A DNA stretch of 64,000 bases from Diadema antillarum (GCF_040938485.1 NW_027270935.1:992001-1056000); one strand, 5' to 3'; numbered from the stretch's first letter, positions 6,301 through 49,900 are shown. The notes: generated by a model from the letters alone, not told the origin. Numbers and translations: made by a program.

Positions 6301-9300
6301 ACCTGAGAAAGATGAAGTCATCTGGTACATCCAACCTGAGTCCATTGCATCAGTTCCCTTACAGTGGATCTAGGAAGAGAAAGAGGGGTAAGACTCACAT
6401 GTTATACTTCTAGTTTCCACCTGGGACGCAGTGGCAGGAAGATGCTAAGATGTTATCAGTGCAATTAATCCCATCATTATGCACTAGATGTGCAACTTTT
6501 CTACATTGTTTGAGTATTTTGTTCGTACAGTTGTGCTTATCTGGGATTCCACCTTATGTCATACATACATCAGTGTTTTTATGCATATTTCTAACTGTAT
6601 CTGTTTCGTAGATTCCTTTTAGCTCATATGAGCTGAATGGCTCAAGTGAGCTATTGTGATCGCTGTCCATCTGGTGTCCAATGTGTGCTGCCTGTAAACT
6701 TTTTCTTATTTTCAACTCTTAGAGAACTTAGATTAGCCAATTTTCATATTTTGTTTTAATTTTTTTCTTCCTTAAAACTGGTGCCTGGATTTTGACCAAA
6801 CTTTGCAGGACATGGCAGGAGGGGGCTATAGTTTGTACAAATGGTGATGTCCCAAGGGGGGGGGGGGGGGGGGGGGGGGGGGGCTCTGGGGCTCTGGGGC
6901 TGGGCCCAAGTACCCAAAATTAGGTGGATGTTGCCCAGGGGGCCTGCAGCAATCCCCAAGTCTCAAGATTGATTTATGTAAAAGCTTGCGTCTGGTAGAG
7001 TGCTATGAAGGTGAAGGACAATGTTCATGTGAGCATTAAACCCACTGGTTTTGTGTGTTTTCAGAGAAAAAGCTCTATCAAATGTCATGTTTCTATCTTT
7101 GTGGCCTCTGTTGATAGTGAAGTATTGGAGATTGTTGAATTATATTTTTGCAAATTTTATTCCCTTTTGTCAAGTTGCAGTGTGGGCAAGTATGGAGATG
7201 ATGATAACAATTAGAATGAAGGAATTTGTCCATTAAATTTATACTCAATCTAAAATGTTGCTCCTAGTCTAGTGTATGTTACATGTTTTTTTTTTTAACT
7301 TAACACATACTTGCCAACTAATAAGATTTTATCAGATTCAGTAAGATTTTTTACATTAAAAATAGCAAAATAAGATTTTCTGTCAGAGAAATAAGATTTT
7401 AAAAAAATATTTAGATATACTTTTCATGTGTATTTTCTGAAGATTTGACTGAAAGTAAGGTTTTTAACTTCAGTTTGCATATAAAATAAGATTTTTGCAA
7501 TCCATGAGTAAGATATTTCATCTTGAAATGTTGGCAGGTATGTTAACAGCCATCCATCCTTTTTTCCATTGATTCTTGATTTCACTGTTTAATTTGTACT
7601 TGTTCACAGGCTTTTCATCCTTGGCCCTCAGTTCATCACGAACTCGACTGTTTGCAAGCTGCACAGATAGTGTTATCTATGAATATGATCTTGGAGGAGC
7701 GCTATGCTCCATCCCATTGAGCCAGTACAGCGGTCACATGAACTCCACCTTCTTTGTACGAGCAGCTCTCTCGCCGAATGACCTCTTCCTTTTGTCTGGG
7801 TCCAGTGACAACCATGCCTATATTTGGAAGGTATGCTCTATGGTTTGCGGACATTCTGAGGGAGTAGTTAATGCATGCTAGCCAGTCATCAGGCAAGCTT
7901 CAGCTTGACAAAATATGTACTGTGGATTCCAGAGAGTAGATCTGTCCATGAATTGAACTACTTTCTTTTTAGTCAACCCTGTCAGATTAGGAGCTTGTGT
8001 TTCATCCTAATTTGTTTTTATGTTGATGTCAATGGATATCACATTAAATATATCACACTTGACAGCAAAGCTAAGGACTAATGGGAGAAAAGTAAATCAG
8101 TGTTCACATTCCTTGATTACATACAGAAATCGTTTGTTTTTGCCACCTGGTAGTCTGTTGGGTGTTTATATTTGAATGCTCAATTTCATTAGTGTTTAAT
8201 TTGGTTGCATGTTTGTTTTACGGTTTGCTGCAAAGTAGCCCTCTCATATACCGGTATACAAATGACGCACAGGTCTGAGTGCGTCAGTCGGAATTGTGTG
8301 CATAAGGTAACTATGGAATGCTTAACCCACGAGGCGAAGCCGAGTGGGTTTAGGCTAAATTCCATAGTTACCGCATGCACACTATATTCCGACTGACGCA
8401 CGAAAAGACATGTGCGTCATTTGATTTATAGAATGGGTAATTTTCTTGTCAAAAACCCAGTTTTCTATCGTGTTACCCGATGACAAAATTACTGGATGCA
8501 TTTCCTTTTGGCTTTCCGTAAAGGGCATGCATACCCGTACTTACGGTTTTTACTGGATGCATGGCCAGCCATGCATAAGTTTTTACTGGATGCATGGCCA
8601 AGCCGAGTGCGCGAACGCTTGCTTTAGTGCGCGAACCTTTGTTACAAGTACGCGTACTCTTGCTAAGTGCGCGATAACATATTTACCACTGTGACTCAGC
8701 GTGCGGCCAGTAAAAATGAACACACAGCTCTCGACCAATCAGATCGCAGCATTCTCGCTACCCATTCTATAATATTTGTTTGCTTCTGTGTAGATCGGAG
8801 AGCCAGAATGTCCGCCATTGACCCTGGTGGGTCATGAGGCTGAGGTCACAGCAGTGGCTTGGTGTCAGAGAGACTTCACGAAGGTGAGCATCTGTTTAAG
8901 GGTATGATTACGCAGATCACCCTTTCTATGGCCTAACAAACTGATCTCCAGTAATTGCACAAAATTTTGCATCAAAATAAAAAGATTGTAAATTTGTTGG
9001 ATTTCATAATTTAAGTTGTGCTTTTTCTTCTTCAAGGCAGGTAGAGGTTATGATAAGTGTGGGGTTTTATTGTATTGTGTTTTGTTTTTGTTTTTGTTTT
9101 TTGGATTGAATTGATATGAAAGACACATTTTTGAATTAGTCTTAAATTGGCAACAAATCACCCCCATATTGGTTCCTGTAGTGAAGTATCTTTGTTATGA
9201 AATTAACGTGAAAGGGACCATGTTTACCATCTAGTCCCAACTTTCTAGCTCTGATATTGAATCTTGCCCCTCAAAATTGATAACCAATGTGAATGATAGA

Positions 9301-11044
9301 GAATTTGAATGAAGAAAGGGTGTGATTGTCATTGAAAGTTTACCTCCGTGGTACAAGCATTTTCATGTTGTGCCTTCAAAGGTCTACTGTGGAACTTTCA
9401 CGCCAGAAACTTTTCACACTTGGCCACTTTCAGTGAATTCCACCTGTTTATGATTTTGTGGAGAAATATAAGTAGAGAAATATTCTCATGTTCTTATTTA
9501 CTGGCCAGTTGAGTAGAGTGTGAAAAAAAAATCTCTACCCTTCAAAGTATTTCATGTTTGCAGTAATTGAATTGATAACCCCCAATTTCCAACACATGCA
9601 GGTCGTGACTTGTTCGGATGATAACACCCTTCGCATGTGGAAGCTGAGAGGCCGGGAATCACCCATTGATGACCAGCTGAATGAGATTATAGGGAGAGCA
9701 AGGAGATGTGAGAGGGAGCCAGACATTGCAGGCCAGGGTAAGCTAATTCTTTCATCTCAGAATCATTGATAACTGGAGTTTCTATACTCTTTCTGTACTT
9801 TGTCCAGAATACATTCTAAAAATTCAAGGTTTTTTGATATATATTATATTATAAAAGTTAAAATAAGTAAAATGAACTTGATTTCATGACAAAGAAAATA
9901 CACAGATATTTCCAATGATAGCTCTCTTGTGTGATGTTATTCCCACGTAACTTTATTACATCTCCACAAGCGGAGTGTACATATTTAACCCGTTGAGGAC
10001 GAGTCCCGAGTACTGGTATACTTGGGGAAGCGTCTATGGGAAATGTGTGTCGTAACAAAATCAGAGCTTCCTCAATGGGTAAAGATGAATTATATTCTCT
10101 TTTTCTCATATCTCCAACACCATCCAGATGCAGTTGTGAAGAGTCAACCAGGCCAAACAGCTCAGAGTGATTTGAGCAGCAAGAACAGGTCCACCCCAAC
10201 CAAGGAAATACCACAATCTCCCATCCAGAGCCCATTGCCATGTAGCACCAAGAAGAGGAAATTTAGCCTTAGAGATTGGGCCACCACATCACCAGGACCA
10301 TCTCGGCCAACCTCGTCCCAGTCGTCCAAATCTTCTCCAAAGAGGCAGAAACAAGAGAATGCAGAAGACAACACTGCGGTGGTCCCCATAGCAACGGGAC
10401 AGGGCCATGTAAAGGAACTGGCCACAAACAAAAGGAAAGTCAGTGAATATATGAAGGGGGATTCCACAGACAATGCATCACTCTCCTCCAAGAAACTTAA
10501 AGTTGTCAATGGTGGATGCACACCTAAATCAAAGACAACACCAGTTCAGATAAAATTGAGTGACAAGTTGGTGCACCAGATTTCAGAGGTTACACAAAAT
10601 AGAGGTAAATCCAATCCCAAATCTAGCAGTGTACTCTCCATGTCAAGTCCAAAAGTGAGTAAGAGTGACAATCACAGAAGAGAGGTAGATCAGGAAAATG
10701 TTAATCACAGAAAGCCCAGAAAGGAATCAGGCAGGGAAAAGGTGACAACCCCTAACCTCCCTCATCAACGATCTCCCCTGAAGGATGACATTCCAATGAA
10801 TGAAGCAACGTCACATGCGCTGAACTCTGTCAAGAAGAACATTGCCTCTGCGTTTTCCGATTCTCCTAAGTCGGTTCTTCAGTGTGAGAAGAGGAAAGGT
10901 GATGGAGAGAAGTGTCGGACCCTTAAGGACAGCTTTGGGGAAAAGAAAGTTGGCAGACTCTTGCAAACAAAGAGAAGGAACAGCAGTGGGACCATTGATT
11001 CATATTTTCAGCCACTCCCAAAGAGGCACAAATCAGAGACATAA
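1969..11044 (+). CDS. DTL: Denticleless/CDT2, WD40 substrate receptor of the CRL4 ligase, 9 exons
   Basis: Phase-consistent GT-AG exons: 1969-2065, 3409-3621, 4247-4495, 5443-5629, 6284-6387, 7610-7830, 8794-8883, 9602-9737, 10128-11044. Motifs: PPFACEF, AHNNAIFDTAW, TASGDQTA, HKCSLKSV, ATGARDGNIMIWD, STFFVRAALSP, SGSSDNHAYIW, GHEAEVTAVAW, TCSDDNTLRMW, then a low-complexity tail ending in PIP-like TIDSYF. An in-frame upstream ATG at 1936 is an alternative start. Confidence 0.95.
2314..2406 (-). pseudogene. tRNA-Ala(AGC)-like sequence or SINE head with an extended variable region
   Basis: Minus strand shows a D arm GCTC-AGTCGGTA-GAGC, anticodon loop CTAGCAA, T arm TCGGG-TTCGAAT-CCCGA and a following T run. 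The acceptor stem is imperfect and there is a ~24-nt variable insert. Confidence 0.6.
3031..3239. mobile_element. MITE with TACTGTAAA...TTTACAGTA ends and internal TTCGCGAA repeats
   Basis: Short inverted termini with TA ends and several TTCGCGAA palindromes inside. Confidence 0.5.
6617..6995. mobile_element. Short HINE-like (non-autonomous Helentron) copy in DTL intron 5
   Basis: Starts TTTTAGCTCATATGAGCTGAATGGCTCAAGTGAGCTA, the same terminal hairpin family as the element at 26781-28205, in the opposite orientation. Confidence 0.55.
7306..7542. mobile_element. MITE with 13-bp TIR and 6-bp TSD
   Basis: TIRs CATACTTGCCAAC and GTTGGCAGGTATG (one mismatch), TSD TTAACA on both sides (7300-7305, 7543-7548), and an internal array of TAAGATTT motifs. 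Confidence 0.75.
8259..8423. repeat. Long imperfect palindrome (foldback) in DTL intron 6
   Basis: Nested inverted arms CAAATGACGCAC, GTGCGTCAGTCGGAAT, GTAACTATGGAAT and AACCCAC around a GAGGCGAAGCCGAG centre (8331-8344). Confidence 0.8.
8426..8772. mobile_element. TIR element abutting the palindrome
   Basis: 14-bp inverted repeats TTATAGAATGGGTA (8426-8439) and TACCCATTCTATAA (8759-8772). Confidence 0.6.
9989..10079. mobile_element. 91-bp piggyBac-like MITE
   Basis: TTAA|CCCGTTGAGGA at the left and TCCTCAATGGG|TAAA at the right; the right TTAA is decayed. Confidence 0.55.
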
Positions 11045-22591: not shown

Positions 22592-25500
22592 GTGTGCGTG
22601 TGTGTGTACGCATCGTACACAAATATTGTCACCGCGAGCTGCGGTGATTGGAGGAGAGAGGCCAGAAGACGCGTGGCTCTTTTGGCCTCTCTTCATGCGC
22701 ATGCGCACTGAGAGTGTGCGTCCATTCGGAAGCTCTCGGGACAGCCATTTTGGGTTAGGAGATAAGCACAGGGAGCTCTCTTGTAGCCTACCGTATTTTC
22801 GCTGACCCATTGAGCCAGCGCTATTCTCATTCGGGGGTCACTACATTTGATACAGAATGGGGGAGGCAGCGTGTTGCGTTCGTCTCCGTGCCGCACAAAC
22901 CACTCGCCACGACTGAGTGTCTTTAAAGATACAAAGCATGCATCATCACATGCATGTGATAAATTCCACGGATGTGATCTTCAAGTGCATTGTTTTTCAC
23001 AGTATGAATCCTTATTGTGGATAATTAACAGCAGTCAACCCTACAGAGAAACTTCTCAACCAGCAAACTGTTCAAAATGGGATACAAAGGATGTATCTAC
23101 ACAATGGCAGCAATTCTCAGGATCAGTAGGCATACATTGATTATGCATTAACTGCAAGTACATATTAACAAAGCATTCTGTCTCTGTTGGAAGCAGATTA
23201 ATATGAAGACTGCACATTGATAATTCAATGAGTGACCAATCACACCTTCAAATATGAAAACACATACTGCATAGGTTGTTAATTTTGCAGTATTTTTATT
23301 TGGGTACATTTGGTGAGTCGACCAATATTCGCTAAATCGGCAGCTGTCGAAAATATTGCCTCCCATGACAAAAATGTGTTTGATATTGTATCCATGGTGA
23401 GGATGCTTCCTTTCCATTTGTCAATTTGGTTCTTGCCCACAAATTCAACCACTCGCACAGTTGCCCACATTGCGAAATGTTACACTCACAAAATACATGA
23501 TGTAGTTAGAATGACACAAAGTCACCCTGTGCTCACTACAGGACAAAACTCAAACAACCTATTTCTATGGTCGATCATAATTCCCATTTATTCATGTGTG
23601 CATCACAACCTTTAAAGAAGCAATAGATGAAAGTGGATGGAACAATGGACGATAATAATTTACTCACGCATTGATAGAATTGCCCTCTTGTCCCACCCGT
23701 CACAAATCTCCTGCAGTCAGCATTCCACGAGGCACTTGTCAAGCAGTCATCAGCTGACTGGCTCATCTTGGGTTTCACTTCACCTGTCTGTCAACAAATG
23801 AAACGGGCAATTATGATTTCATGGTGAGCTGCTACAAATAAAAATCAAATAAAAATCATACCGTAAAAAATCTTCACTGTGATCGGAGTGTTCTAGAAAG
23901 CCCAGCCTCATTGTCCATGTTACCCCAGCATAGCCAGGTACCCTTCTTTACACATGGGTTAAAAGACAGACAAAGTAGATAAAACTTTCATCCAAGGACA
24001 TTTGCACAGTAAGTGTGCTGGGCAGGACAATTTAAATTCCGAGATGAGTCAGTACATATGCAATCTGCCTCCACTTTTTTTTGTTTTTGTTTTTGTTTTT
24101 GTTTTGTTTGTTTGTTTGTTTGGTTTTTTTTGGGGGGGGGGTTCTGCTGCAATTACATGCACTGACTCTTGAATGGCAATAACTCTAATATTTTTAGATT
24201 TTCTTCTCTGAACTTTGATTCATTAACTTTACCCCTTGTAATATCACTGTTTGATCTACAACAACACTCTCATGAGTACCGTAAATAATGGTGTATTAAC
24301 GGCACCCCTTGTTTTGGCCATCAAAGGGGGGGGGGGGGGGGGAATATCTGCCTGGGCTATCTCCTCATATTTTTGTTTATGAACATTTGATCCGATTTTC
24401 CTCATGACATGATGAAGCTATCTTTTTGCAGGGTTGAACGAACATTTCATGCCTAAAATGATTTATCCTTATTTTTATTAGACACCAATTGAATAAAAAG
24501 AATACAGAATCATAACATTTGCAATCATACCAGTAGGTATTGGGTGTAGGTATTGGCTGTAACGGTGTATAAACCACACCCTGAATTTTAACCAGTTTAG
24601 TTGGGGGAAAAATGGTGTGGTTAATTCACCGTTATTCATGGTATGCATTTGCAATATTCCTTTGTAGATCAGTCATTTTACGTCTTCTACCCATTTCCTC
24701 ACCTCAACATTCCAGACCCAGAGTTCTGAGGAGTCCTCAGGACCACACACTATGAGGTATTTACTGTCTGGACTCCACGCCAGGAATGACACGCCAAATG
24801 CGTGACCTTCCAACGTCTTCTTACGCTTCAGCTCCAGTGTTTCCTGCATCACAGAAAAAAAAAAAGCATGAAGAGGTTTTCAAATTATTTGTAAACTTCA
24901 TTCATTGCCCTTACAGTGATAACTTTAAAGGCTAAAAGCTCCCATTGGCCCGAATTCACGAAGGTGGTACAAATGAAGCCATGGTTTAAACCATGGACAA
25001 AAACTATGGAGCGCCAAGTGTCGCATGGAATATTTCGTTACGAAATTGTTCATTTCGTCGACAAAATTACCCGTTTCGTTAATGAAATTATCATTTCGTG
25101 GACGAAATGTTCATTTAGTTACAAAATGTTGTTATTTCGTTACAAAATAATCATTTCATCGACGAAATGACTGATTTCGTAACGAAATATTCCATGCGAC
25201 ACTTGGCGCTCCATAGTTTTTGTCCATGGTTTAAACCATGGTTTCATTTGTACCACCTTCGTGAATTTGGGCCATAGAGACCACGGTTTATACGAGTTAC
25301 ATTTGCTGCAAAAAGCCATGTGAAGCTGATCCAAGAACAACAGATGCAGCTTTGACATTAATGCCTTAAAAGTCTTGGGTATTGACATCAAACTTCAGTG
25401 AAGTGTCAGAGAACAAGACAGTTCCTAATTTTGTAGTGGCACAACTACCATTTCACCATAAAGATATGGCAAAAATCTTGATTGATCCACCTGAAAATGA

Positions 25501-29278: not shown

Positions 29279-32200
29279 ATGGAGTTCAAAGATGCTATCA
29301 AGGAATTAGAGGAGGAGGCTGGAATTAAGTTTAAAGAGGAGCAGGTAGAAATAATGGAAAGCACAGTGAAACAGAAGGACACCTTAATGATATTGCCAAC
29401 TGGGTTTGGCAAGAGCGTTTGTTTTGGTTTCCATCACCGAATCTTGGATAAAGTGAGTATGCAATGGCATCAATAAGTACAGTGAAAGTAGCAAACTGAA
29501 GCCATACAGGGTACTAGTTATGATTAGATATTTCAAATCATGATAATGATAATCATTATATCACTATCATAATCTTATATAATTTATCAAGCAAGGCAGG
29601 TTCTGATGACATAATAATATTAAAATATCGATCAATTAAAGCAAGCATGGTTATGAGATAAGGAAAAATGATTATTGATTGAACACGAATAGAAAGGCTT
29701 AAAAAAGCCATTGCCGGATCAAGCAAGACAGCATCAAAAGAATAAAAATGTGTGAATGGGGTCTACAATTTATCTTTCATAGCAATAGGCCTACTGATTA
29801 GACATTTATCATCTTACAGTTTAACAATTTGACAAGTTTAACTATTCAACAAAATTCTGTTAATCCTTTTAATCTAGTTCTATTTGTAGGATAGTGAGAT
29901 ATGTAGGCCCTATATTTTGATCAATAAATTGTTATTTATGATAATCAGCTAAGTTTTTATTTTCAGAATAGATATGTCATGTTAGGCCCCATACAGAAAT
30001 TGAGTATGCATCAACTACATTTTATGACAGATTGAGGCAAGATCATACACTATGAATAATATGAAGAAATAGACATGGAAGACTGAATTTAAAATTATCA
30101 ATGCAGAAACACTTCAGGAGGCACACTGTAACTTCTCATAATTTATTCAGACTTTATCGTCTTTGTAGCAAAATACAATTCTTCTTATGTACGAATGAAA
30201 ACTTCGTATAGCTCAAAGTTATATGTAGAATACAGCTGTCTATATATTCACATCTACAAATGTACATTTCTGTCCTTTTCAATAGATACATCCCAAAAAG
30301 CGCCACATAACAATAGTTATTACTCCGCTGAAGAGTTTGATCATCAATCAAGTCATGAAGTGGCGAGAGGAGGGGGTGTGTGCAGTAGCTCTTTTGCCTG
30401 CAAGGGAGATGACTGGAGCTGACACTGAAGGTGAAAAGTCTGCTTATAACAACAACAGCATCCTGCATAGAAATTTGATGGTCTGAAGCAGTATAAAATC
30501 TCATCTTTTTATAAATAAATGAGAAATAGACTTTTCATGCAGAATACACACTTTGATGGGAAACAAGGGGCCCTGAGGTGAAACATCACATGCCAGACTT
30601 CATACACAATGATAAAAAATAGCTGAAATTCACAGATGACTTGTAGATCAATATTGGCTTTCTACAGGAAAAGAGCTGCACAGAAGAAGAAGCTATATGG
30701 TTCCCAAACAAGTCATACACATAATTTCAAGTGAGAAGATATGGCTTCATAATAAACTTATTTGCAACACATCGATTCTACACTTTTTGTTTCACATTTC
30801 AAAATGATGCTGATGTATGAATAAAAGCTATGAAAATAGAAAGAATCTTTGATAGATTATTGAAACTGTCTATTTAGACCACTCAGTTAAACTCTCTGTT
30901 AAACTTTCTCTGTCTAAAATATTATCAGGTATGAACAAGGCACATTTCCAGTTGATTTTTGCTTCACCGGAGATCATTACTTCTGGCGTATGGTGGGAGT
31001 GGCTCAAGAAACATCGCCAGAACATCTCTCTTGTGGCAGTGGATGAAGTACATTGCCCTTCCAAGTGGTGAGATAAAGTCCTCTTAATTTCAGACCTACC
31101 GAGTATATGAAATTCACAGATAAAATTATCAGATACTGACTGCAAGCAAAGCAAGACAAGTTCACATACGCTTTCATGTTCATGTATATGCCCCCATATC
31201 AAAACAACTGTTTCCCCATTTCCTGCATTACCCAGGTAGATGATCCTTGGCTAACTGATGCTCGTGTCTGTCAACCATTATTACAAGAGCAATAAACAGG
31301 GCAAACAATGGCAATAAAGAGATATTCTTGGAGTGCCAATCACCCCCACCCCCCCCCAGCATGCCTATGAGTGGAATACCTTTCATATTACACTAGTTAC
31401 ATTATTCAAAATTAATTTGTAGTCTACTAGTATTACATAGAATCACTGGGGGGGGGGGGAGGAGTGATTGACACCTTCAGACCCATTGAAAAGTTTATAC
31501 TTATCAAACATGCAAACATATTTCACATGCAAAAAAAAAAAAAATTCCATGGTCTCAAGAGGGAAAAGGGAAAACAACCCCTCCCAGACCCTCCCCTTGT
31601 CAGCTGATGAAACCCTAAAGTGGCAGCAGAAGTTGCACTGAAGGCCCCCCCCCCTTTTTTTTTTTTTTGCTTGTTAGCTGGTGAAACCCCGAAGTGGAAC
31701 CAGAAATGAACTGCCCCTCCCCCATTTTTAAAAACGTGGCGCCAAACCGTCAAAACGCACACCCTCCCCATCCCACTCCCCTTGATTAAAGCTGGTGATG
31801 ATCCTGCTTACCAATCTATCTACTTGATTTGGTTAAAGAGTATGTACATGTACATTTATTTACTCAGGTAATACAACAGGTCTTAAAGCTTTTATATATA
31901 TAGATAATTAATTCATGATATTTTGTTTTTATGATTCTAACTAAATCAAGGGGAAAAAGCTTCAGACCAGACTATCTGAGAGTAGAGAGGTTGCGCAGTA
32001 TCTTGATGTGTCCATGGATGCTGATTACAGCTACTGCAACAGACCATATGGTTGAAGAAATCCTAGAGCTTCTCCACATGAAAAGATCACGGATCAACAT
32101 TTCTGCAACAGTTCCTGACAGGTACACAAATAATTGTTGCTCAATCAATATGCTGAATAATGAGAAAGTATCAGTCAAAGAAGATTGATCACAGTATTGC

Positions 32201-38076: not shown

Positions 38077-41000
38077 ATTTGACATCTATCCTCATTACCT
38101 GCTACAGGGTCATCTTTGCTGATGTCGACACAGGACTTGTGATACCATTCATGCTTTTTACAGTGCTCTGCTAGGTGGCATTGCACCATCCCCTCATCTC
38201 CAGTCTGACACTTCTTATGGCAGAAGCAGTAGATGTACGAGTCACTGTCTTTACACCCTTGAGAGCAGTACCAGTCTTCGTCAGAATCTGGTGCCTCTTG
38301 GAGTCCCACACAGCTTAAATGGAACCATGCATGTCTACATGTCTTAGAGCAGCACATGACCATTTCATCTGACTTCTCTGTTGGTATATAAGCAAACATA
38401 CAATGGCAAATAAACAAAAAAACACTTTAGGGTTATAAAGTGTTTATAGTAACTGTGTGCACAGTTGTATGTGAACTGAATTCAACTTGGTATTATCAGA
38501 TCTTAATATTTACATTTGAAATCATGTCAGCTGTTAATGCTTCAGTAAAATGTTTCATTTTATTTGGAGAGTGCCACATCACTGCAGTGAGCTTTAATGC
38601 CTCGTAAGACAAATATAATAGATTTTAAGTTATTGATATGTAGATTAACAATGAAAATCCTCCCATAAATAATTCATAACACACTAGTATATACTGTGGA
38701 CATGGAAGCTGTATTATCAACCCTTTTTCTCATTAGGCCCATTTCAGTAACTAGGGTAATGAATGGAGTGTCAACAGTAGGCATTTATGCAATCTGTTGC
38801 AATACAAAATGTCACTTCCAATTCCTTCAAGAGCCAGATCCATTCTTGCATCACAGAATATGTTTCTACTCGCAGACATGGTAACTAGACAATGATGAGT
38901 CACGTTGTCATGGCTATTTCAAAAGAGATGTTCATGAATTTCCTACCATCATATAAGATCTTTCTAGCCAAACATCAACCATTACACGAATATTCAGATT
39001 GAAGTTACCTTTTGTGTTGCAGAAACAGTACCGTAGAGCGTCATCAGGAACATCTCTTAATTTCTGATCAAAACCTGCTGCAGCTACTTGCACATCTCCT
39101 CGATCTGGCGGAGCCCAGCAGAAGTCCACCACCCGCTGTGATAGATTAGATAGCCACTTGAGCTGTGCTTCTACATCCTGCTCAGTTGGCAATCCTTTTG
39201 GCTGATCCTCTAGTGATGATACTCCGCATAGTTTCATTGCACACAGAACGATGTGTGATTCTGTCACAAACTAAAACGTTGAATGAGAGAATAAGAAATC
39301 TCTGAAACATGGTCTATTGAGAGTGAAACTAAGTAAATGTTATTTAGGATGGAAGGGGCAGGAATGATGAGTTAAGTAGCTGAATATCACCCAACGTCCA
39401 CACATAAAAAAGTAACATAGCCAATCCAAATGCAGTAATTATTTTTTTTCATGAATTGAAATCGTCACAATTTCATTTATGTTGCAATTATCAGTTGTAT
39501 GAGATTACTTAAAAACAACCAAAACTCAGTTGCAGTGAGCATCAACAAATAAAGAATTAGTAGTTCACACAAAGTCTATCATGGATTTATTACCTACACC
39601 AAGGAAGGAGGTTATGCTTTTGTCTGTTTTGATTTGTCAGAGTGCAAAATAACTCAAGTTGTCTACAGATTTGATGAAACTTTACTCACAGAAAAAGTTG
39701 AGAATGTCACAAAAAAACGCTGAAGAGGTAATCACATTTCAGCATTTTTTGTATATTTTTACTTACCTATCATTGGGAGTTATATGTGTATAAGTGGAAA
39801 TGAATTGCTTCGAAGAGGTCTATGCTCTCTGATTCCTTTTCTAGTTTTTGTATTTTCATACAAAAGTTTATATACACTTATATATACCTTATACAGATCC
39901 CAGACATGCTGAAAGTTCTCAACTGCATCTCTCTTGAATGACCTGTGATTGAACTCATTCTTCAGTTGAGCAATGGTTCCCCTGTCAGCCAGGCTGGATG
40001 CTTGGAAGAACTTGTTGTTTGAATCCTGTTTGTATGATAATGATTATGCATAGTTCATATAATAGGCACAGCTAGGATTGGGTTTGTAGGTGTTTCATGT
40101 TAGTGGCTTTGCCTCCCCAACACACTTTACATGTACAATAAAAGGGAGGCACCCGTGTTGGAAACTGTCACCCCCAATGCAGAGTGTTCAAATCAGATTG
40201 CAATTGAACTGAATGTTTAATTATTTCGTATTCATGAATGAACTACCTGTACATGAGGCCCTTTATTTTTATATGTGGCCTTTGGAAATCTACCATAAAT
40301 TTCAGAATGAAAGAAAAAAATCCTTTACTTTAACATACCATTACTGCCGTTGTCAAATTGAGCCAATATTTTTTTTCTTGTTTTTTTTTAAAGGCAGGTT
40401 GTGAATACAAAAGAAATTTTTTGCACACATATTTCTGACTATCTGCATCACTACTTCCATCCCCAAATTATCAGTTGCTTTTTTTTTTCACCAAACATTA
40501 TAAACATAACATAGGCCTACACAAGTTACCAAAATGGTATATCATTACCTGCACATGGAGGATTTCCTTGTGGAACTCTTGCGGGCAAGCGTAAAATGCC
40601 TCCAAACGGTCATCCCACTTTGCTCCATTACTCCTAGCCCGCTGTGCGTGGAGAATGCGCTCAATGGTGAGGCCATCACCACTCAGGAGACATGGTTTGG
40701 GATGATCATCCACAACAGGAACATATTTCTGCAAATGCTCCATCACTGAGATCATACCCTGAGTGGAGCCTGGATCAGCGTCAACAACTCCCAGAGTGAC
40801 CTATATTTCAAAAAAGAAAGGAAGGGAGGAACGAAGGAAGGAAGAAAGAAAGAAAGAAAGAGAAATTGAAGTAATGTTTCTTGCAAAAGTGATGTATTTA
40901 ATACTATGATTGCAGACCACAGGCAAGCAACATATGGGAGGGTTAATTTTTGGGCAGACTAGGTATTACAATGTATCTTTTTTCTCAGAGTGCTTCCTAC

Positions 41001-44000
41001 CCCAGTGGCGGATCCAGAGGGGGCGCAACCAGCACACGCCCCCCCCCTTTAATTTTCATTAGAAACAAAGAAAATAAAAAGGATAAAATGAAATGAAACC
41101 CAGAAGTGGCAATAGTAATATTAGTCACGCCCCCACCCCCCCCCCCTTTACAGAATTCCGGGATCCGCCCCTGCTACCCTCCCCTTCTTTAAAATTGCAT
41201 TCAAACCTACCATATCCCCACAATGATTACTTTAACCCCTCCTTATGATAGAATAGGAATAAACTACAAAAACATGTTTCAAGGAAGACAAGCACTCCTA
41301 TTTAATGCACATGCATTGAATAAAAACAATTGTGTTACCATGTTAAATAAAAACTTACACATTGAGATTTCTCATCCATTTCAGTAGTATGAGAATGAAG
41401 GATTCTGGAGGGAATCTTGTTCTGTAGATGCTTAAGTTGCGTCATGTGCTTGGGTAGCAGGGACTGTACCAGAAAAACTGCTCTTGCTCTCTGTCGCTCA
41501 AACACATCAGGAGATGGAAGGAATGTGTATGGATCAAGACTTGCTGCTGGTACTTGTAGAATTGCTGATCCCTCTTTGACTCGATCTTTGACAGCAAAAC
41601 ACATCGTTTGCAGGAGGAACTTGTTTCCATGTCCTTTCCTCTGATGTTTGGCTTCAGTTCCAACCTGTATGTTGTCAATACAGAAGCCATAGCTGTATCC
41701 GCCGGTGTCCTTGATCGTCTGCTGAGTTTCTGGTTTTTCCTAATAAGCAGAAAGAGGGGAAAAAGTTTGTCTTTCTTTAACCCAATAAGGCCCAAGCTTA
41801 TTTTGACCCCTTCCAGGGGGGGGGGGGGGGGCACACATTGTGCTCTATATAATCTTTTTACTATATGATGTATGACTGTCATATTTGGCACTTTATATCA
41901 ATCATTTTCATTTGCCACAAGTGAAAAGCAAGGAAACCTTCACTATTTTGTAATGGTTGAAATTTATTAAGGTCAACATGTGGGGGCGCTATTCATTACA
42001 AGGTAAAGAAAATAATGCATAAGAGCTACGCTGAATTGCTTGGGATAGTTTTAGATATTTGTATCACATTTCATATTTCCATAGTATTGATATTCTTTTG
42101 CAGATTTATAATATGATAAACAAATGATGTTAAAGGCAAAACACATAATAATAGGGTAATCTTAAGAAAATGCTGCATTTTCAATTATTTCCATTATATT
42201 TCTTGTTTGATGGCTATGTCACAGCGACCATTGTAGGGTAATTCACAACCATAATTACTTCACTTTTTGGTCCTTCAGCAAATTACAGCCAAGAAAACCC
42301 CATTTTATCTATTATCATAATTGTTAACTGAAATTGGAACAGAAAATCATGCAAAATCTGACGAACATGGTTGTCAGTTTATGGTTGCCCTGGCAGCTAG
42401 TAATACCTGACATAGTTAAATTATATATCAAACTGTTTGCAATAAGATTTTAGGAAAGGTCACCAAATATTGTTGAAATCAGGTAAAGGGTGTCGGAGTG
42501 GCGAACAAAAACATTGTGCCCCCCCCCCCCCTTGGGCTTTATAGGGTTAAAGTGTGCGGATAACAGGGGGACATGACATTTTCATCTCTTGCTTCTCATC
42601 TACAGATGTGTTTATTGGGTGTTGACACTTTAGAGATTCAAAATAATTTTCTTAAAATATTAGTTCTGCAGATCAAGTACATTTTCCAAGCTTTCTAACA
42701 AAATAACCCTTTGAGTAGCATTCTACAACTTTTCACTGAAATAAGTTTGCCCACCTGAGATTCTTTCCACTTCCACAGTTCATCATCATGTTTCTTCCCA
42801 ATGATGTCCACATTTCGTCTGGCTGTGTCCGCACTTTGAGATATCCCCATGTGGTTCAATGTGGTGAATACCTTGTGGCTCACTCGTTGTCTCCAGAGCT
42901 CTATCCCAATGCAGGATTGCACAAATTTGTAGATCGGACATTTTGTGTAGAGGACAATTGCAAGTATTTGACCAGCCTTTCGAGCCAGATCACTGCAAAG
43001 AAGATTTATTATATCATTTATAACATCTGTATTACCATTAATGACATAACTTTTATTACATCACTGTAATTTATGAAAAATGTGTTTGGTCTTGGTCACT
43101 TGTTGCTTGTTCCCAGTAATATTATAGGAAAAGGGAAAAGGATGTGTTTTAAGAACATTAGGCCTATCATTATGAACTGTTCAAACTGGTTATTTTTGTG
43201 TTTTATTTTGATATATATGTATGAAAACAGTTGATTGTTACCCGTTGAGACGAAAGAGGAACTTCAGTTTTTTTCTTTTGTTAACCAAATACATTTCATA
43301 CATAAATAGAACATTCTTTTTCACAGAATCTGTTAGCCATCATTTGTGAATATATTTTGATTTGATTTGATGTATTTTCCACTTTCAATCAGATACAAAT
43401 TGAAAACAAATTTCAAAAGCACAAAGACAAAGAACAGCAAGTGCAGTGATATTTAACAATGTAGTGTACAAACAGATACAAATGAGCAATTGCATTAAGC
43501 AGTATATGTGTATACATACACACAAAAACATATTTTTTTCAGTAAATAACAGAGACAATTGAATGCAGGAGACTGCCATCGTAAGCGATTTAACTTGAAA
43601 TGGATGGGGCCTCATTAAACTATCCAGTGACACAACTCTAAGATGAAAGTTAGTGCTCAGGTGGATCCAGTTACTGTATATAATTCATTCACTCATAATA
43701 TGTTATATATACACACATCTCTATTATATTGACATTATGTTCAATTATTATGTCTTGTTATGCTGCTATTATAGGGCCTACCCATAAACAGCCCTCAGGG
43801 TTCTCTCCGCAGTTCATAGGTAATTGTCAATAGTGTTGATTTTATCTTACATTATATTTACCTTCTGTTTTCTCCATTTTTCTTGACTGGCATCATTGCC
43901 CAGATGCAGCTTACTGTGGCTGGCATGCTCTGCTCTGCCTCCTCCAAGGCTTTTTCCCAGGAAAATGCAGCAACTGTAGTGTGGTTCACTTCTTGCTGAA

Positions 44001-46188
44001 ACGCTTCCAGCTTTGGTTTTGCTTTCATCTGACATTGAAGATGAAGTAACAATCTTTAAATAAATATGCATAAATTATTTTCTGCAGAAAATGAAAATCA
44101 GGAAGAAAAGCTGTGCTGAATTAAAAGTGTGAAGAAGAATGAAATTACTGTTTCCTTCTTTTCATCTCATTATCCATCTGTGAAAAGTAAGTGTTTTCTA
44201 TAGTAAAGGGAGGGTAAAATTTTGTCGTGATGGGGCTTTTGGTTTCCATCGTTTTTATTATGATGAACGGATGCTGATTCTTTTTTTAGTTAGAATCTCT
44301 TTGTGGTTATTTGCGTGTATTCAGTATAATGCGAGTCAAAGCACACCTCGAATACAACTAAACCAACTCTGTTCAGCCAAATATCATTACAACCTCAAGT
44401 AACAGTAAATGAATGGATAACTAAATAAATAGAATCAAAAAGAAATCCTAATTGAGGTGATAAATATTATTTACATATTTTATGGCTCGGTCACAAAAAA
44501 AAAAAAAAAAATTGATATCAAGATAAGAACTGCTACGAACGTAAGTTCGGATCCTGGTCGATGATCTAATGCAAAGGTTTTTTGTTTTGTTTTGTTTTGT
44601 TTTTTAACTTCGTGAAAACCCCACTCTTCGTAAGGTGGCCATTATTATGAACCTCAGAATTCGTATACGAACAGTGACATTCGTACGAGCGCTTCGTTCC
44701 AACGAACTTTTCAGTGACCCGATAGATGGCAAACTTAGTTGTTACGATTTCAGTGATCACCCCTCCCCCCTCCCCCCCAAAAAAAAAAAAAAAAAAAAAT
44801 GGAGAAAAAAGTAATTCCGAGGGTGAACATGTTGTGGGTACCTAGCTGCTGGTGATGAAAGAACTAATAGGCCCATATTTTGTGACCCGCTCCAACAAAA
44901 AGATCCAGAAGTCGTCGGAGGATTTTCTTAAAATGACATGACATTATCCCCTTACTCTCCTGCTTTAAGTTCGTATATAACAAGACTAATTAAAGTACTT
45001 GGTTGCGGAGATATCAATGATTTTATGAGACCATGTCGACTGAGTGGTCTAAGAAAAGCTAAGAAATCAGCGTTTTGAGAAAACCGCGCCTTCAATGTTT
45101 GTTTTGTTCTTTTTTTATCCCCCGATACATGCCATGCACGGATCGATAAGATCACTCCCTCGTTGCTAGGGGCGGGGCCTTTCTGCGGCGCTAAATCTAA
45201 ATCGTCGGACACTTCTGTTCAGTTGAAAGTCGCAAAATCAGGGCCAAGAAAAATTCTACTCTCTTGCCTTTCCTTTAATCATTTAGCGTCGAAATTTCGG
45301 CAGATGATAGACGATATATTAGACTACAAAACCATGTCAAAAACGGAAATTTGATAGTTTTGGCCGATTTTGACGATCTGACGTTAAACACAATTTTCTC
45401 GGCTCAGCCGTCAGCGATTCTAGAATCCTTTCGTTGTGGCAAGTCATATTTATTCTTAAATTGATATTAACAGCGATAATAATTCTACTACTAATAAATA
45501 TAATATACTGTATGCAGCAGCGTCATAATTGTGATGTTAACACATAGGCCTAAGAATGAAAACAGCGTACCTCATTTTTGATCATCTCTGCTGCGGCAGT
45601 AATCACTGCTCGCTTTGCGGGTGCAGAGTTCTTGGACATTGTCCGGATGCCCAGCAAATACCGATATGATTTTATAAACCCCACTGCTTTCTCTAGTGGT
45701 GTTGGCATAGAATCATCGGGATCCCCGGATGCACGCTCTTCTCCTTCTCCTTCTCCTTCTCCTTCTCCTTCTTCATCTTCCTCTTCATCGCTTGCTTCAC
45801 ATCCAGTGTTCTCAGCTTGACTTCCTCCAACATTGAAATCAAGCTGCTCTGTTTGACTTGTGGATATCTGTTTTTGTGGGGTCGCAAAAAGGGCCCTCTT
45901 TTTTGCCTTGGGGGTTGGGGATACTGGCTCCTTATTCTCGCGTAGTTGACTTCTCGGAGGGCGCCGACGAGCAGTCCGTTTTTTCCCTCGTTTCATAGTG
46001 TTTCGGAATATTTCGGTGCGGCATTTAGTGCACACAAAATTGTCTAGGTATACAGTCCTGCCACAAAGCTTGAAGGCTGTACCCGGAGATGTCACAATTG
46101 TGGCAAGTCTAGATCGATTGTACCCCTTCAGTCCTTTTTCAAATAAAGTCATGCACATAGCACATCTCGATGGATCAAAATGAGCCAT
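34173..46188 (-). CDS. DUF6589-type putative DDE transposase with two PHD fingers, 1018 aa, 11 exons (AcademHP-type)
   Basis: Exons 46188-45571, 44028-43862, 42992-42755, 41739-41359, 40800-40549, 40025-39888, 39270-39009, 38377-38099, 37255-37028, 36457-36326 and 34534-34173 total 3057 nt with consistent phases. Family-like motifs as I recall them: GFCIDNI, SGDGLTIER..AQ..R.N, QEFH, AVREGDG...WK...HPKY, WNRVAN.KG..GGNIGLDLVNEFMN. Two C4HC3 PHD-like fingers lie across exons 7-9. No HMM search was run. Confidence 0.87.
39587..39846. mobile_element. Degenerate non-autonomous Helitron/HINE-like insertion in transposase intron 6
   Basis: Starts TTATTACCTACACCAAGGAAGGAGGTTATG and ends GAGGTCTATGCTCTCTGATTCCTTTTCTAGTT, resembling a widespread short rolling-circle-type family. 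The assignment is from memory. Confidence 0.4.
41003..41173. mobile_element. MITE with CAG(T/G)GGCGGATCC TIR and 6-bp TSD, in transposase intron 4
   Basis: Ends CAGTGGCGGATCC and GGATCCGCCCCTG, with TSD CTACCC at 40997-41002 and 41174-41179. Confidence 0.8.
41781..42546. mobile_element. piggyBac-like non-autonomous element in transposase intron 3
   Basis: TTAA|CCCAATAAGGCCCAAG at the left and CTTGGGCTTTATAGGG|TTAA at the right; the TIRs match 14/16 and the TTAA TSD is intact. Confidence 0.8.
44880..45447. mobile_element. Degenerate TIR element in transposase intron 1
   Basis: Left TGTGACCCGCTCCAACAAAAAGATCC versus the reverse complement of the right end TATGACTTGCCACAACGAAAGGATTC, about 18/26 identical. 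Confidence 0.4.
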
Positions 46189-46985: not shown

Positions 46986-49900
46986 TACGTGTATGGTGCA
47001 AAATGTTTACCTTTGATCTTTAGCCCATTGCATGGCCTCAAACTTTATTTATTATATGCAGAATCAACCTTTACCTGATAATACTTTCAATGTGTACATG
47101 TAGTTTCATGAAAATAAATTCAGAAATTGTACATGTTGATATATATAGAGATGTTGGGAAAATGGTGGACTTGTAGTATAACCTTGACCTAAGATCATTG
47201 CCTCTGATAGGCACAGCATATTAGTGCACTCATACAGTGTGCATGTAAGTGACACTGGGCTTGCATTATTGTCACCTTCCCTCCCCAGGTATATAGCATC
47301 ACGATCATGAGAATGAGTACTAGGGACATGACATAATAATTTAGTGCTTATTTTATTCCTAATGCGAATGAGAAGGAAGAGAATAAGTGTATGAATATGC
47401 TTGTACATTACCATCACCAATACATAAAAGGTGTAATCACACACTCGTATGTATAAATAACAATATCAATATGAAGCTATAATTGAGTGTATAGTGTTAT
47501 TAGATATAGTGTCGATAATAGTGCAAAAAAAGACACTAAATGTTTTGAAAATGACATATATATAGGGAGCAGTGGAATACAATCCCCATGACCATATGGA
47601 TGGATCTGAAAGGGTTACTTTCTAGTTTTTCATTAACCAATCCATCATACCGTTAAGATGAAAGCCAGTCTAAAACTTTATCTATATTTCATGAGAATGA
47701 AAAAAAAAATCCAGGAGAACACTGCAAAAATGATAAAATCAGATTTAAAAAAAAGGAAATAATGACATTCTGATATAAAAATTTCGGAAGACACTCCTTG
47801 TCCCGTTGCTATGAATGAATGAATGAATGAATGAAGAAAATGAAGGACTACTCAGAGTCAACTTTATTGATCTGTATATCACAGTACATAGAAATTTAGC
47901 TTCCAGTTCATCCAACTTGTTACACACAAATAATCATTAAACACACATGCGTGCAGACACACACACACAATCAAACAGCGAGTGACATGCCCGAAAGAAA
48001 AAGACAGGAAAGGATTCCCATACGGTGGAATTCTTTGAAAAAAGAAAGGTCTCTTTAATAAATAATCAAACAATCCTGAAACATTGAAAATAGACAAGAC
48101 ATGTATGTAACAGAAGTGTATTCAAATCAAATCACAGCAGATAATAAACATGAAGCAAAAATGAATATGAGTCCCCAAGAAGCAGAGCTTGTGAGTGGAG
48201 CCCATTGTGAATGTACAACATTTTACAGTGTGAAAGGAAACTTGATTTATAGATGAGACATCTGGGACATTGCCCCTGCAGACTGGGAAAAAACAAATAA
48301 ATAAAGAAACAAACAAAGAAACAAACATACCCTCTATCATGAAAATCACCTGTTATTTTCTTAATCCGTCATATCTCCAGATGTTCATTATGTGTGCACT
48401 TCCTTTATTGCAAATAAATAATGAACCACACATTCAAAATGTGCTTTAAAAACGAAATTAATAAGTGCCGGTAGGCCCGATAGTAAATCAGCGCCCAACA
48501 TGCGTTCTTTTTTGTTACATCTCATGAATATTCATTTCAGATCTCAGCGAGCCGTCCGGGTTTTTTTCCACACGCATACATTGCGTATTATAGTATGTGC
48601 TACGTTTTATCCATATTCGCGCATGCGCTGTGTAAGTCGTACCACAATACGAAATGCGGTAGGACTTTAAAACCCTCGGATAAACTCTTTCACAGGGCTC
48701 TCAAAACAGATCATATTGTAAATCGACTTCGCCTGCTGTGATTGTAAGTATCTTATCTAAGAGTAAGGCTACAAATTTCAGTATAAAACCCTGTATTTTG
48801 GTCTCTGGTCACCTAAATGCTAAGCCATATCAGGTGCTTCCGTGACAGGATAGGCCTTGCGGTGCGACCCCTTTACGGTACGTATTTGTCCGTATGGGGT
48901 CGCTGCTGCGGTTAGGGCCTAATTAAATTTACTACACTAAACTTACCGTTCTCCACTGTCGTTTCTCACACCTTGTTTGGTACGATTTCTTCCATTTTAT
49001 ATCACTTTATCCGTTCCCTTTGTACTTTGAAGTATTTTACGTAATTCTTTCAAGTGTCTCGCACTGCTATTTTCGTAACGGCGATTTTTCCGCTTGCTGC
49101 AATCACTTTTTCGAACCGAGGCGACGAAGTTTGATACCAGCCGCTTTAGTGTGCTGTGGACTGTCTTTCTAAATACATGTACCGGTATTTGGGAGGTGTT
49201 GATACTTTGTATTTGTTATTTTATTTTCCTAGGTGTTTGTCTCGAGGGACTACATTGTATGCGTGTTTCTTAATGTTGATAGGAAAAGGCTAAAATTGTC
49301 TGGGTGATGTCTGATGGTGGTGATGATAACTATGCTGGTGGAAAAAGACGGCTTACTGTGAATGCTGAGCGTACGTGCCGTTTGTTTTATTTCACTTTCC
49401 CTCTTATTCTTCTTTCCCCCTTACTCTTCTTTTCCCTCCCAAGAATGATAAAAAAAGAAATTACATACACCTCACAACAAAAAAGAACCACGTGCTACCA
49501 ACCTTCGTAAAGTTAAATCTAAATGTTCAACATCAGCAAAGAATAAGGGGAAAGCACGAATGACAATAAATCAGAGCGAAGAGATTGTGTTACATGCAGT
49601 CTCTTCGGCTCGAAGAAACTTGACACCCCACCTCTCTCCCCTTGTGGAAATTTCCACAAAAGCAGGTGCCACACCCAGGTGCGTGCCAGACGAAAGAATG
49701 CGCGCACTGAAATAAACAGCGTGTAAATATCCTGGAAATATCGATCGAAGAATCAGCTCATTAGTTGAATTAAAGGAATCATTGCAAAGATATCGTGATT
49801 CTATAGCCTTTCTTTTGGCGCATAGTAGGAAACATCAAACAGTCGAATATAGTGTACTTGATCGAATATCTTATGTTCCCTGAACACTAAAAAAAAAAAA

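Follow-up and report, generated by a model that had tools for sequence, protein, structure and literature searches.

A probable full-length, very recently mobile AcademH transposon in the sea urchin Diadema antillarum

A stretch of 64,000 nucleotides (here, the window), 100% identical to contig JBFRCO010000047.1 of the Diadema antillarum assembly GCA_040938485.1, encodes two convergent, intron-rich genes: one for a RecQ-like superfamily 2 (SF2) helicase, and one for a large DUF6589 protein with PHD fingers. Coordinates count from the start of the window (Table 1). Both genes lie within a 20-kb segment whose ends are common to dispersed copies elsewhere in the assembly. This segment is, with high probability, a full-length autonomous cut-and-paste transposon of the AcademH lineage (PHD-bearing animal sublineage) that has been mobile in D. 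antillarum very recently. To our knowledge, Academ is among the least studied superfamilies of eukaryotic DNA transposons; we know of no Academ element that has been shown to move experimentally, and of no role established for the Academ helicase.

Two convergent genes

On the plus strand, stop-free segments between 29.2 and 34.2 kb carry the SF2 helicase motifs in order: I, Ia, II (DEVH), III, IV, V, and VI are all present. The best sequence matches in the PDB are to WRN, RecQ, RECQL4, and RECQL5 (E 4e-19 for exon 6 and 8e-6 for exon 4), and the Pfam domain Helicase_C is recognized with E 3e-15. Several observations bear on the splice model. Junction 3 restores the RecQ signature DEVHCPSKWG-SFRPDY; a partial 230-residue NCBI model uses the same last two junctions; and tblastn against a relative in Strongylocentrotus purpuratus aligns the helicase in six collinear blocks, interrupted at the very residues where the model has its junctions (59, 107, 153, 212, and 251). 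Junction 2 (30430/30929) is the least certain from Diadema alone.

The protein shares with the cellular RecQ helicases (WRN, RECQL4, RECQL5, and Escherichia coli RecQ) the core motifs, the DExH...FRPxY stretch, and, where RecQ has its zinc subdomain, a carboxyl-terminal cysteine cluster. It differs from them in length (only 415 residues), in having neither the RQC winged helix nor HRDC nor an exonuclease domain, and in being encoded inside a transposon. The sequence ends about 75 residues after motif VI, shortly after the cysteine cluster; no RQC or HRDC domain follows the helicase core, and PDB matches to the last exon span this core only.

On the minus strand, stop-free segments between 34.2 and 46.2 kb encode fragments of DUF6589, in collinear order, and a PHD finger. 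The whole-library HMMER query was a single exon (window 41338-41703, minus strand), and the full-length relatives that it returned guided exon placement. The resulting model has GT-AG introns throughout and no internal stops. The NCBI model XP_071483013 (P0001, 835 residues) is identical to residues 184-1018 at 835 of 835 positions, and all ten junctions are therefore independently reproduced. The original prediction, made from the sequence alone, had proposed two complete spliced open reading frames of 415 and 1018 codons, spread over 17 exons without a stop; rebuilding them gave exactly these counts. It had also singled out candidate catalytic codons, and D363, D510, and E891 fall precisely where it had put them.

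Residues 184-1018 were modeled by AlphaFold with 20 homologues (predicted local distance difference test 80, predicted template-modeling score 0.77). The model predicts an RNase H-like fold with the D, D, and E residues on the canonical DDE elements: in P0001 numbering, D180 on strand E175-184, D327 just after strand E322-326, and E708 on helix H703-719. Between the fifth strand and the E891 helix it places an insertion of about 320 residues, made of helices and two zinc fingers. A VIA-align scan of 48,161 PDB chains placed the Drosophila P element transposase at the top (Z 8.7 over 350 aligned residues), and nearly all of the other matches likewise have the RNase H fold: retroviral integrases, Hermes, UvrC, the Argonaute PIWI domain, PRP8, Tn5, and ISCth4. 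A Foldseek search with the whole protein returned no match with E below 0.001. Since the Z values are modest, what is claimed is the fold and the interrupted-core architecture, not specific kinship with the P element. The proposal that the large protein is a DUF6589 protein with an RNase H fold thus gains support from the Pfam match (DUF6589, E 5e-31 on P0001) and from the fold matches to transposases and integrases. By this model, the 1018-residue protein is an RNase H-like DDE transposase with an interrupted core.

Both PHD fingers lie inside the insertion domain. Their closest PDB sequences are those of Yng1, ING3, and ING1 (E 1e-9 to 3e-9), with the second finger also matching ING2 (E 2e-6); the signature Tyr (YCxC) and Trp (WFH) align with those of the ING fingers; and structural Z values of 6-7 are obtained with ING fingers solved in complex with a peptide of histone H3 trimethylated at lysine 4 (H3K4me3). 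These matches suggest targeting to H3K4me3 chromatin. The ING and Yng fingers are H3K4me3 readers; those of the transposase differ in being paired inside an insertion domain, and their histone binding is putative.

At the amino terminus, both CxxC pairs are conserved in the family consensus, and Pfam zinc-ribbon matches are weak. A basic and then an acidic stretch follow, outside the modeled region. Presumably, the zinc ribbon and basic stretch serve DNA binding and nuclear import.

Table 1. Features of the window element and of related loci
Feature	Position	Strand	Basis
Whole transposon copy, TAACC...GGTTA, 20,037 bp	28878-48914		copy comparison
Left terminus: 5-bp inverted repeat TAACC and subterminal palindrome (11-bp arms 28889-28899/28909-28919)	28878-28919	+	sequence
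Right terminus: GGTTA and subterminal palindrome (8-bp arms 48864-48871/48896-48903)	48864-48914	+	sequence
Left-flank 9-mer GCTGTTTCA, differs from right flank	28869-28877	+	sequence
Right-flank 9-mer GGGCCTAAT	48915-48923	+	sequence
Left ~970 bp of element, deep in DNA contigs of a related organism	28884-29848		depth ~14x interior
RecQ-like SF2 helicase gene, 415 residues, 6 exons	29279-34170	+	splice model, motifs, PDB and Pfam matches
Helicase exons	29279-29452, 30286-30430, 30929-31067, 31951-32121, 32893-33015, 33675-34170	+	
Stop codons of the convergent genes, 2 nt apart	34168-34175		models end at 34170 (+) and 34173 (-)
Transposase gene, 1018 residues, 11 exons	34173-46188	-	relatives-guided GT-AG model, NCBI model, Pfam DUF6589
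Transposase exons 1-6	46188-45571, 44028-43862, 42992-42755, 41739-41359, 40800-40549, 40025-39888	-	
Transposase exons 7-11	39270-39009, 38377-38099, 37255-37028, 36457-36326, 34534-34173	-	
N-terminal CxxC...CxxC zinc-ribbon-like motif (C9, C12, C53, C56)	46021-46164	-	model sequence
Catalytic D363 (IDN), strand beta-1 of RNase H-like core	41674-41676	-	predicted
Catalytic D510 (GDG), directly after strand beta-4	40675-40677	-	predicted
Two tandem ING-type PHD fingers, residues 679-727 and 735-787, exons 7-9	37230-39030	-	PDB matches
Catalytic E891 (NEF), helix after insertion domain	36348-36350	-	predicted
Family B, D. setosum	L005:10001-82208		collinear with L006
Family B, D. antillarum	L006:10001-70078		collinear with L005

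Ends, copies, and target sites

The two genes had been described as having no visible termini. For a single copy this holds. A self inverted-repeat search of 24-52 kb reveals no long terminal inverted repeat (TIR), and the perfect inverted repeat between the element ends is confined to the terminal 5 bp (TAACC/GGTTA), accompanied by subterminal palindromes; this is why the termini were invisible to a first reading and to the self-search alike. It does not hold once copies are compared, which is the sole means by which the ends, outside the 29279-46188 interval of the two genes, were found.

The assembly contains five copies, those of the window and of loci L001, L003, L004, and L007, each with the same left and/or right boundary; the left terminus is identical in all five. 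Their contexts are WDR26 (window and L007), a LETM1-like gene (L001), an intron of a Q_salvage gene (L003), and a fusion with a PHO4-type gene (L004). Similarity to the window begins or ends exactly at the element boundary, and the flanks, save the left one of L007, are unrelated. For L001, which lies on another contig, about 20 kb align with the window, with abrupt breaks at window positions 28878 and 48916. Common exact termini and dispersed copies are also what DDE cut-and-paste transposons display, here with a perfect TIR of only 5 bp.

The copies are strikingly alike. Over 20,030 aligned sites, only 13 substitutions separate the window copy from L001 (2 exonic, 11 outside exons), and both reading frames and every splice site are intact in each. 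The truncated, gene-fused L004 copy has 4 differences in 13,005 sites; L003 is about 0.5% divergent and has lost part of transposase exon 2; and in L007 a 312-bp deletion takes out the D510 region. Divergence is equal in exons and introns (0.05% versus 0.07%), as expected for transposon copies drifting after insertion. A paralogous gene, family B (see below), provides a scale: between D. antillarum and D. setosum, its synonymous divergence (dS) is 0.03 and its introns are about 5% divergent. By this measure the youngest copies are roughly 50-fold younger than the split between the two species. Moreover, D. setosum is not represented in the 90%-identity protein cluster.

DNA contigs from runs X1-X3, of a related organism, contain element copies about 2% divergent. 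Depth over the left ~970 bp of the element is 359, 899, and 458-583 there, against 26, 84, and 27 inside, with a loose end at 29848. This excess suggests that the related organism harbors non-autonomous derivatives sharing the left end. Large DNA runs under the same species label (X14-X16) contained none of the sampled words of 33675-34534; this could reflect presence/absence polymorphism of the element in that species, or a labeling or coverage effect.

In L003, GGGCCCACA stands on both sides of the element as a target-site duplication (TSD). Two further pairs are split between different assembled copies: the 9 bp of GGTCTAGAG stand to the right of L001 and to the left of L004, and the 10 bp of GGGCTACTCT to the left of L001 and to the right of L007. 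PMC10045372 gives the TSDs of AcademH as 9 or 10 bp and those of AcademX as 3-4 bp. All three reconstructed targets start with TAGGG, and the window right flank starts with GGGCC; four sites are too few for statistics.

The original prediction left a choice between a live autonomous copy and an immobilised, domesticated module. The presence of several nearly identical copies at dispersed sites, with TSDs and precisely the same ends, points to a recently mobile transposon, and so favors the former; multiple dispersed copies were the very finding named in advance as fatal to the latter. Indeed, it is extremely improbable that the pair is a transposon-derived, single-locus module kept for a host function. 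Such a module would explain why both reading frames are intact across 17 exons and why NCBI annotates both as ordinary genes, and domesticated-looking relatives do exist (family B and a Lytechinus lineage). It would not explain the dispersed copies with their identical ends and TSDs, the equal divergence of exons and introns, the lack of a D. setosum member in the 90%-identity cluster, or the retention of catalytic triad and helicase, which sets this family apart from its dead relatives.

Very unlikely, too, is an origin of the copies by segmental duplication or as retained haplotigs instead of by transposition. The assembly invites this reading, as it keeps both haplotypes (1.75 Gb for a genome of ~0.7-0.9 Gb, with 84% duplicated BUSCOs; PMC13511894), and L007 and the window have a near-identical left flank. 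However, the flanks of L001, L003, and L004 are unrelated to those of the window, and similarity ends at the same base pair in every copy; segmental duplications generate neither identical boundaries in unrelated contexts nor 9-10-bp direct repeats at them.

An AcademH element and its relatives

An AcademH lineage of the Academ superfamily, with a PHD-bearing animal sublineage, was reportedly described by Kojima in 2020. Characteristic of this sublineage are a DDE transposase gene accompanied by a second gene for an SF2 helicase related to RecQ, TSDs of 9-10 bp, a PHD finger within the transposase, low copy numbers, and animal hosts. The window family resembles it in all of these: the helicase gene stands beside the DUF6589 DDE protein, in S. 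purpuratus as well as here; two fingers occupy transposase residues 679-787; and TSDs of the proper length come from L003 and the two half-site pairs. Assignment to AcademH (AcademHP), as first proposed, fits accordingly well. Features that distinguish the window family are the near-identical 20-kb copies in D. antillarum, the tandem pair of ING-type fingers, the 5-bp inverted termini with subterminal palindromes, and the TAGGG-like targets.

The best structural match, P element/THAP9 (PDB 6p5a and 6pe2; Z 8.7-8.8 over about 350-360 residues), likewise has its RNase H-like core split by a large insertion domain, which precedes the last of the catalytic acidic residues. Sequence identity is only 8%, so the resemblance is one of fold. 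In contrast to P element and THAP9 proteins, the window transposase has neither a THAP domain nor a GTP-binding insertion domain (Pfam recognizes DUF6589 and PHD only); its insertion is α-helical and carries the PHD fingers. The TIRs of P elements are 31 bp long and their TSDs 8 bp, and they carry no helicase gene. Hermes, a hAT transposase (PDB 8edg and 4d1q), is similar in its RNase H-like DDE core and all-α insertion (Z 6.8-7.0, about 300 residues), and differs in possessing a BED finger and a hAT dimerisation domain, neither of which Pfam finds in the window protein. The hAT elements make 8-bp TSDs and have no helicase gene.

Together, these features suggest how the element might work. The transposase is predicted to comprise, from amino to carboxyl terminus, a zinc ribbon with basic stretch, a helical domain, and the RNase H-like DDE core, in which the PHD-bearing insertion domain separates the E891 helix from the remainder. 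Integration proceeds by target cuts staggered by 9-10 bp, at sites that start with TAGGG in all three reconstructed cases, and the PHD fingers might tether the transpososome to H3K4me3 chromatin. The RecQ-like helicase may unwind or remodel DNA at the element ends or the target during transposition, or act in subsequent repair.

Relatives show what becomes of such elements. The family search with P0001 covered up to 8000 candidates and returned chiefly relatives from echinoids, and so under-samples taxonomic breadth. Within it, the D/D/E triad is kept in the window family and in relatives from S. purpuratus, Branchiostoma, and Ptychodera. Other lineages have lost it: S-D-E in Lytechinus (P0003, P0126, and P0129, with a 3-residue deletion in the second motif), N-V-E in Diadema family B, N-N-K in a third Diadema group, and D-C-G in Acanthaster.

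The S. purpuratus relative LOC100893251 (P0127) has an intact DDE triad and a convergent six-exon RecQ-like helicase (L008:18486-23301), so that this species shares with Diadema both the arrangement of the two genes and the positions of the helicase introns. This helicase is not annotated as a gene, and the element in its entirety is intronic to a gene of the rRNA adenine dimethylase type.

Family B (P0004 and P0112) is a DUF6589/PHD paralogue 59% identical to the window protein. Its gene spans 60-72 kb through intron growth, and only decayed helicase fragments lie downstream. The ratio of nonsynonymous to synonymous substitution (dN/dS) between D. antillarum and D. setosum is 0.26 (710 codons, p 0.0009). 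A single syntenic orthologue and lost catalytic residues are thus found in family B and not in the window family, and family B is a candidate domesticated Academ transposase. The Lytechinus relatives, conserved between L. variegatus and L. pictus, may represent a second immobilised or domesticated lineage; at the L. variegatus locus (L009), the helicase is reduced to a scrap of about 70 residues. Judged by the tree and the sequences, domestication in this protein family looks to have occurred in sister lineages, not at the window locus.

Swapped flanks and the window neighborhood

Several points weigh against the picture of a recently mobile AcademH copy. The window copy itself has no TSD: its left flank, GCTGTTTCA, differs from its right flank, GGGCCTAAT, and a search for partners of these half-sites found none. 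Between the copies as assembled, flanks are swapped in a chain: the right flank of L007 equals the left of L001, whose right flank in turn equals the left of L004. HiFi reads (modal depth about 11x) underlie the assembly, and Nanopore reads from other individuals served to patch its gaps (PMC13511894). A 20-kb repeat at 99.9% identity can easily be mis-threaded in such an assembly, and the swapped flanks reflect either this or real recombination between copies. With an assembly that is redundant and retains haplotypes, copy number and some junctions are therefore uncertain. Mobility is deduced from copies, ends, and TSDs, with neither an empty site nor an excision footprint observed. Homology to curated (Repbase) Academ transposases has the DUF6589 match as its sole proxy, and the literature searched yielded no text linking DUF6589 to Academ; the class assignment would otherwise depend on the helicase gene, the 9-10-bp TSDs, and the PHD fingers. 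The roles of helicase and fingers in transposition are inference only.

A further point concerns RNA. Runs X1-X3, considered as transcript support, were rejected: they cover introns evenly, contain no joints, and diverge by about 2%, as genomic DNA of the related organism. Support for the splice junctions therefore comes from the NCBI models and from cross-species conservation, and not from RNA reads. Two small runs from the species of the related organism, X7 and X8, contain 42% and 26% of the words of the all-exonic interval 33675-34534, and may be RNA.

The missing TSD raises the prospect, a little short of an even chance, that the transposon family is real and the window copy is a chimera, its left flank and left part from the insertion adjacent to WDR26 and its right part and right flank from another. 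The join could have been made by an assembler threading through the 20-kb, 99.9%-identical repeat, or by true ectopic recombination between copies. The flanks fit a chimera. The left flank of the window belongs to a repeat, no continuation of which turns up on the right; L007 combines this left flank with a different right flank, one that pairs with the left half-site of L001; and the right flank of L001 pairs with the left half-site of L004. Furthermore, window and L007 have only 3 mismatches over the 16 kb of common left flank and element, yet different right flanks, in a genome with 2.5% heterozygosity (PMC13511894). Mis-assembly in particular is not demanded by this pattern, which real recombination or aberrant transposition would equally leave.

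The left-flank repeat was noted in its own right. Positions 28430-28877 are part of a high-copy repeat, with a depth of 260-560 in the contigs of the related organism against about 26 in the transposon interior. There, the repeat runs past 28877 with sequence absent from the window; a search for this continuation did not find it.

A more ambitious reading seems doubtful: that the family is still transposing in living D. antillarum; that the ING-type pair steers integration to H3K4me3 chromatin at TAGGG-like sites; that the element has itself rearranged its surroundings, so that the swapped flanks are genuine, WDR26 has lost its 5' half at the window locus, and contig 193 carries an inversion; and that the sisters without triad and helicase were domesticated in Diadema and Lytechinus.

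As a probable AcademH transposon, the window family is well suited to a first functional study in a superfamily about which little is known. Full-length copies with both genes intact, 0.07% apart, and with defined ends and TSDs offer a starting point for a transposition assay. They open the questions of what part a RecQ-like helicase plays in DDE transposition, whether PHD fingers that read histones guide integration from within a catalytic insertion domain, and in what ways such an element remodels the genome of a sea urchin that is ecologically important and went through a recent bottleneck. A live family beside catalytically dead, helicase-less relatives under purifying selection forms a natural series from transposon to domesticated gene. 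Finally, 20-kb near-identical repeats are a practical warning about contig joins in this assembly.

Other features of the window lie to the left of the element or overlap its left end. The NCBI model of a WD40 (WDR26-like) gene (24173-29280, minus strand) has its start ATG at 29280, head-to-head with the helicase start at 29279. This ATG is inside the left end of the element, so the annotated first exon of the truncated WDR26 is transposon sequence. Positions 26900-28170 are occupied by tandem repeats, with units of ~330 bp that are 85-88% identical; a (GACGGAC/GACGCAC)n microsatellite closes the array at about 28080-28160. Further left, at 4174-11044 on the plus strand, WD40 exons and a 340-residue terminal exon have the look of a DTL/CDT2-type gene, judged by eye from translations of the reading frames.

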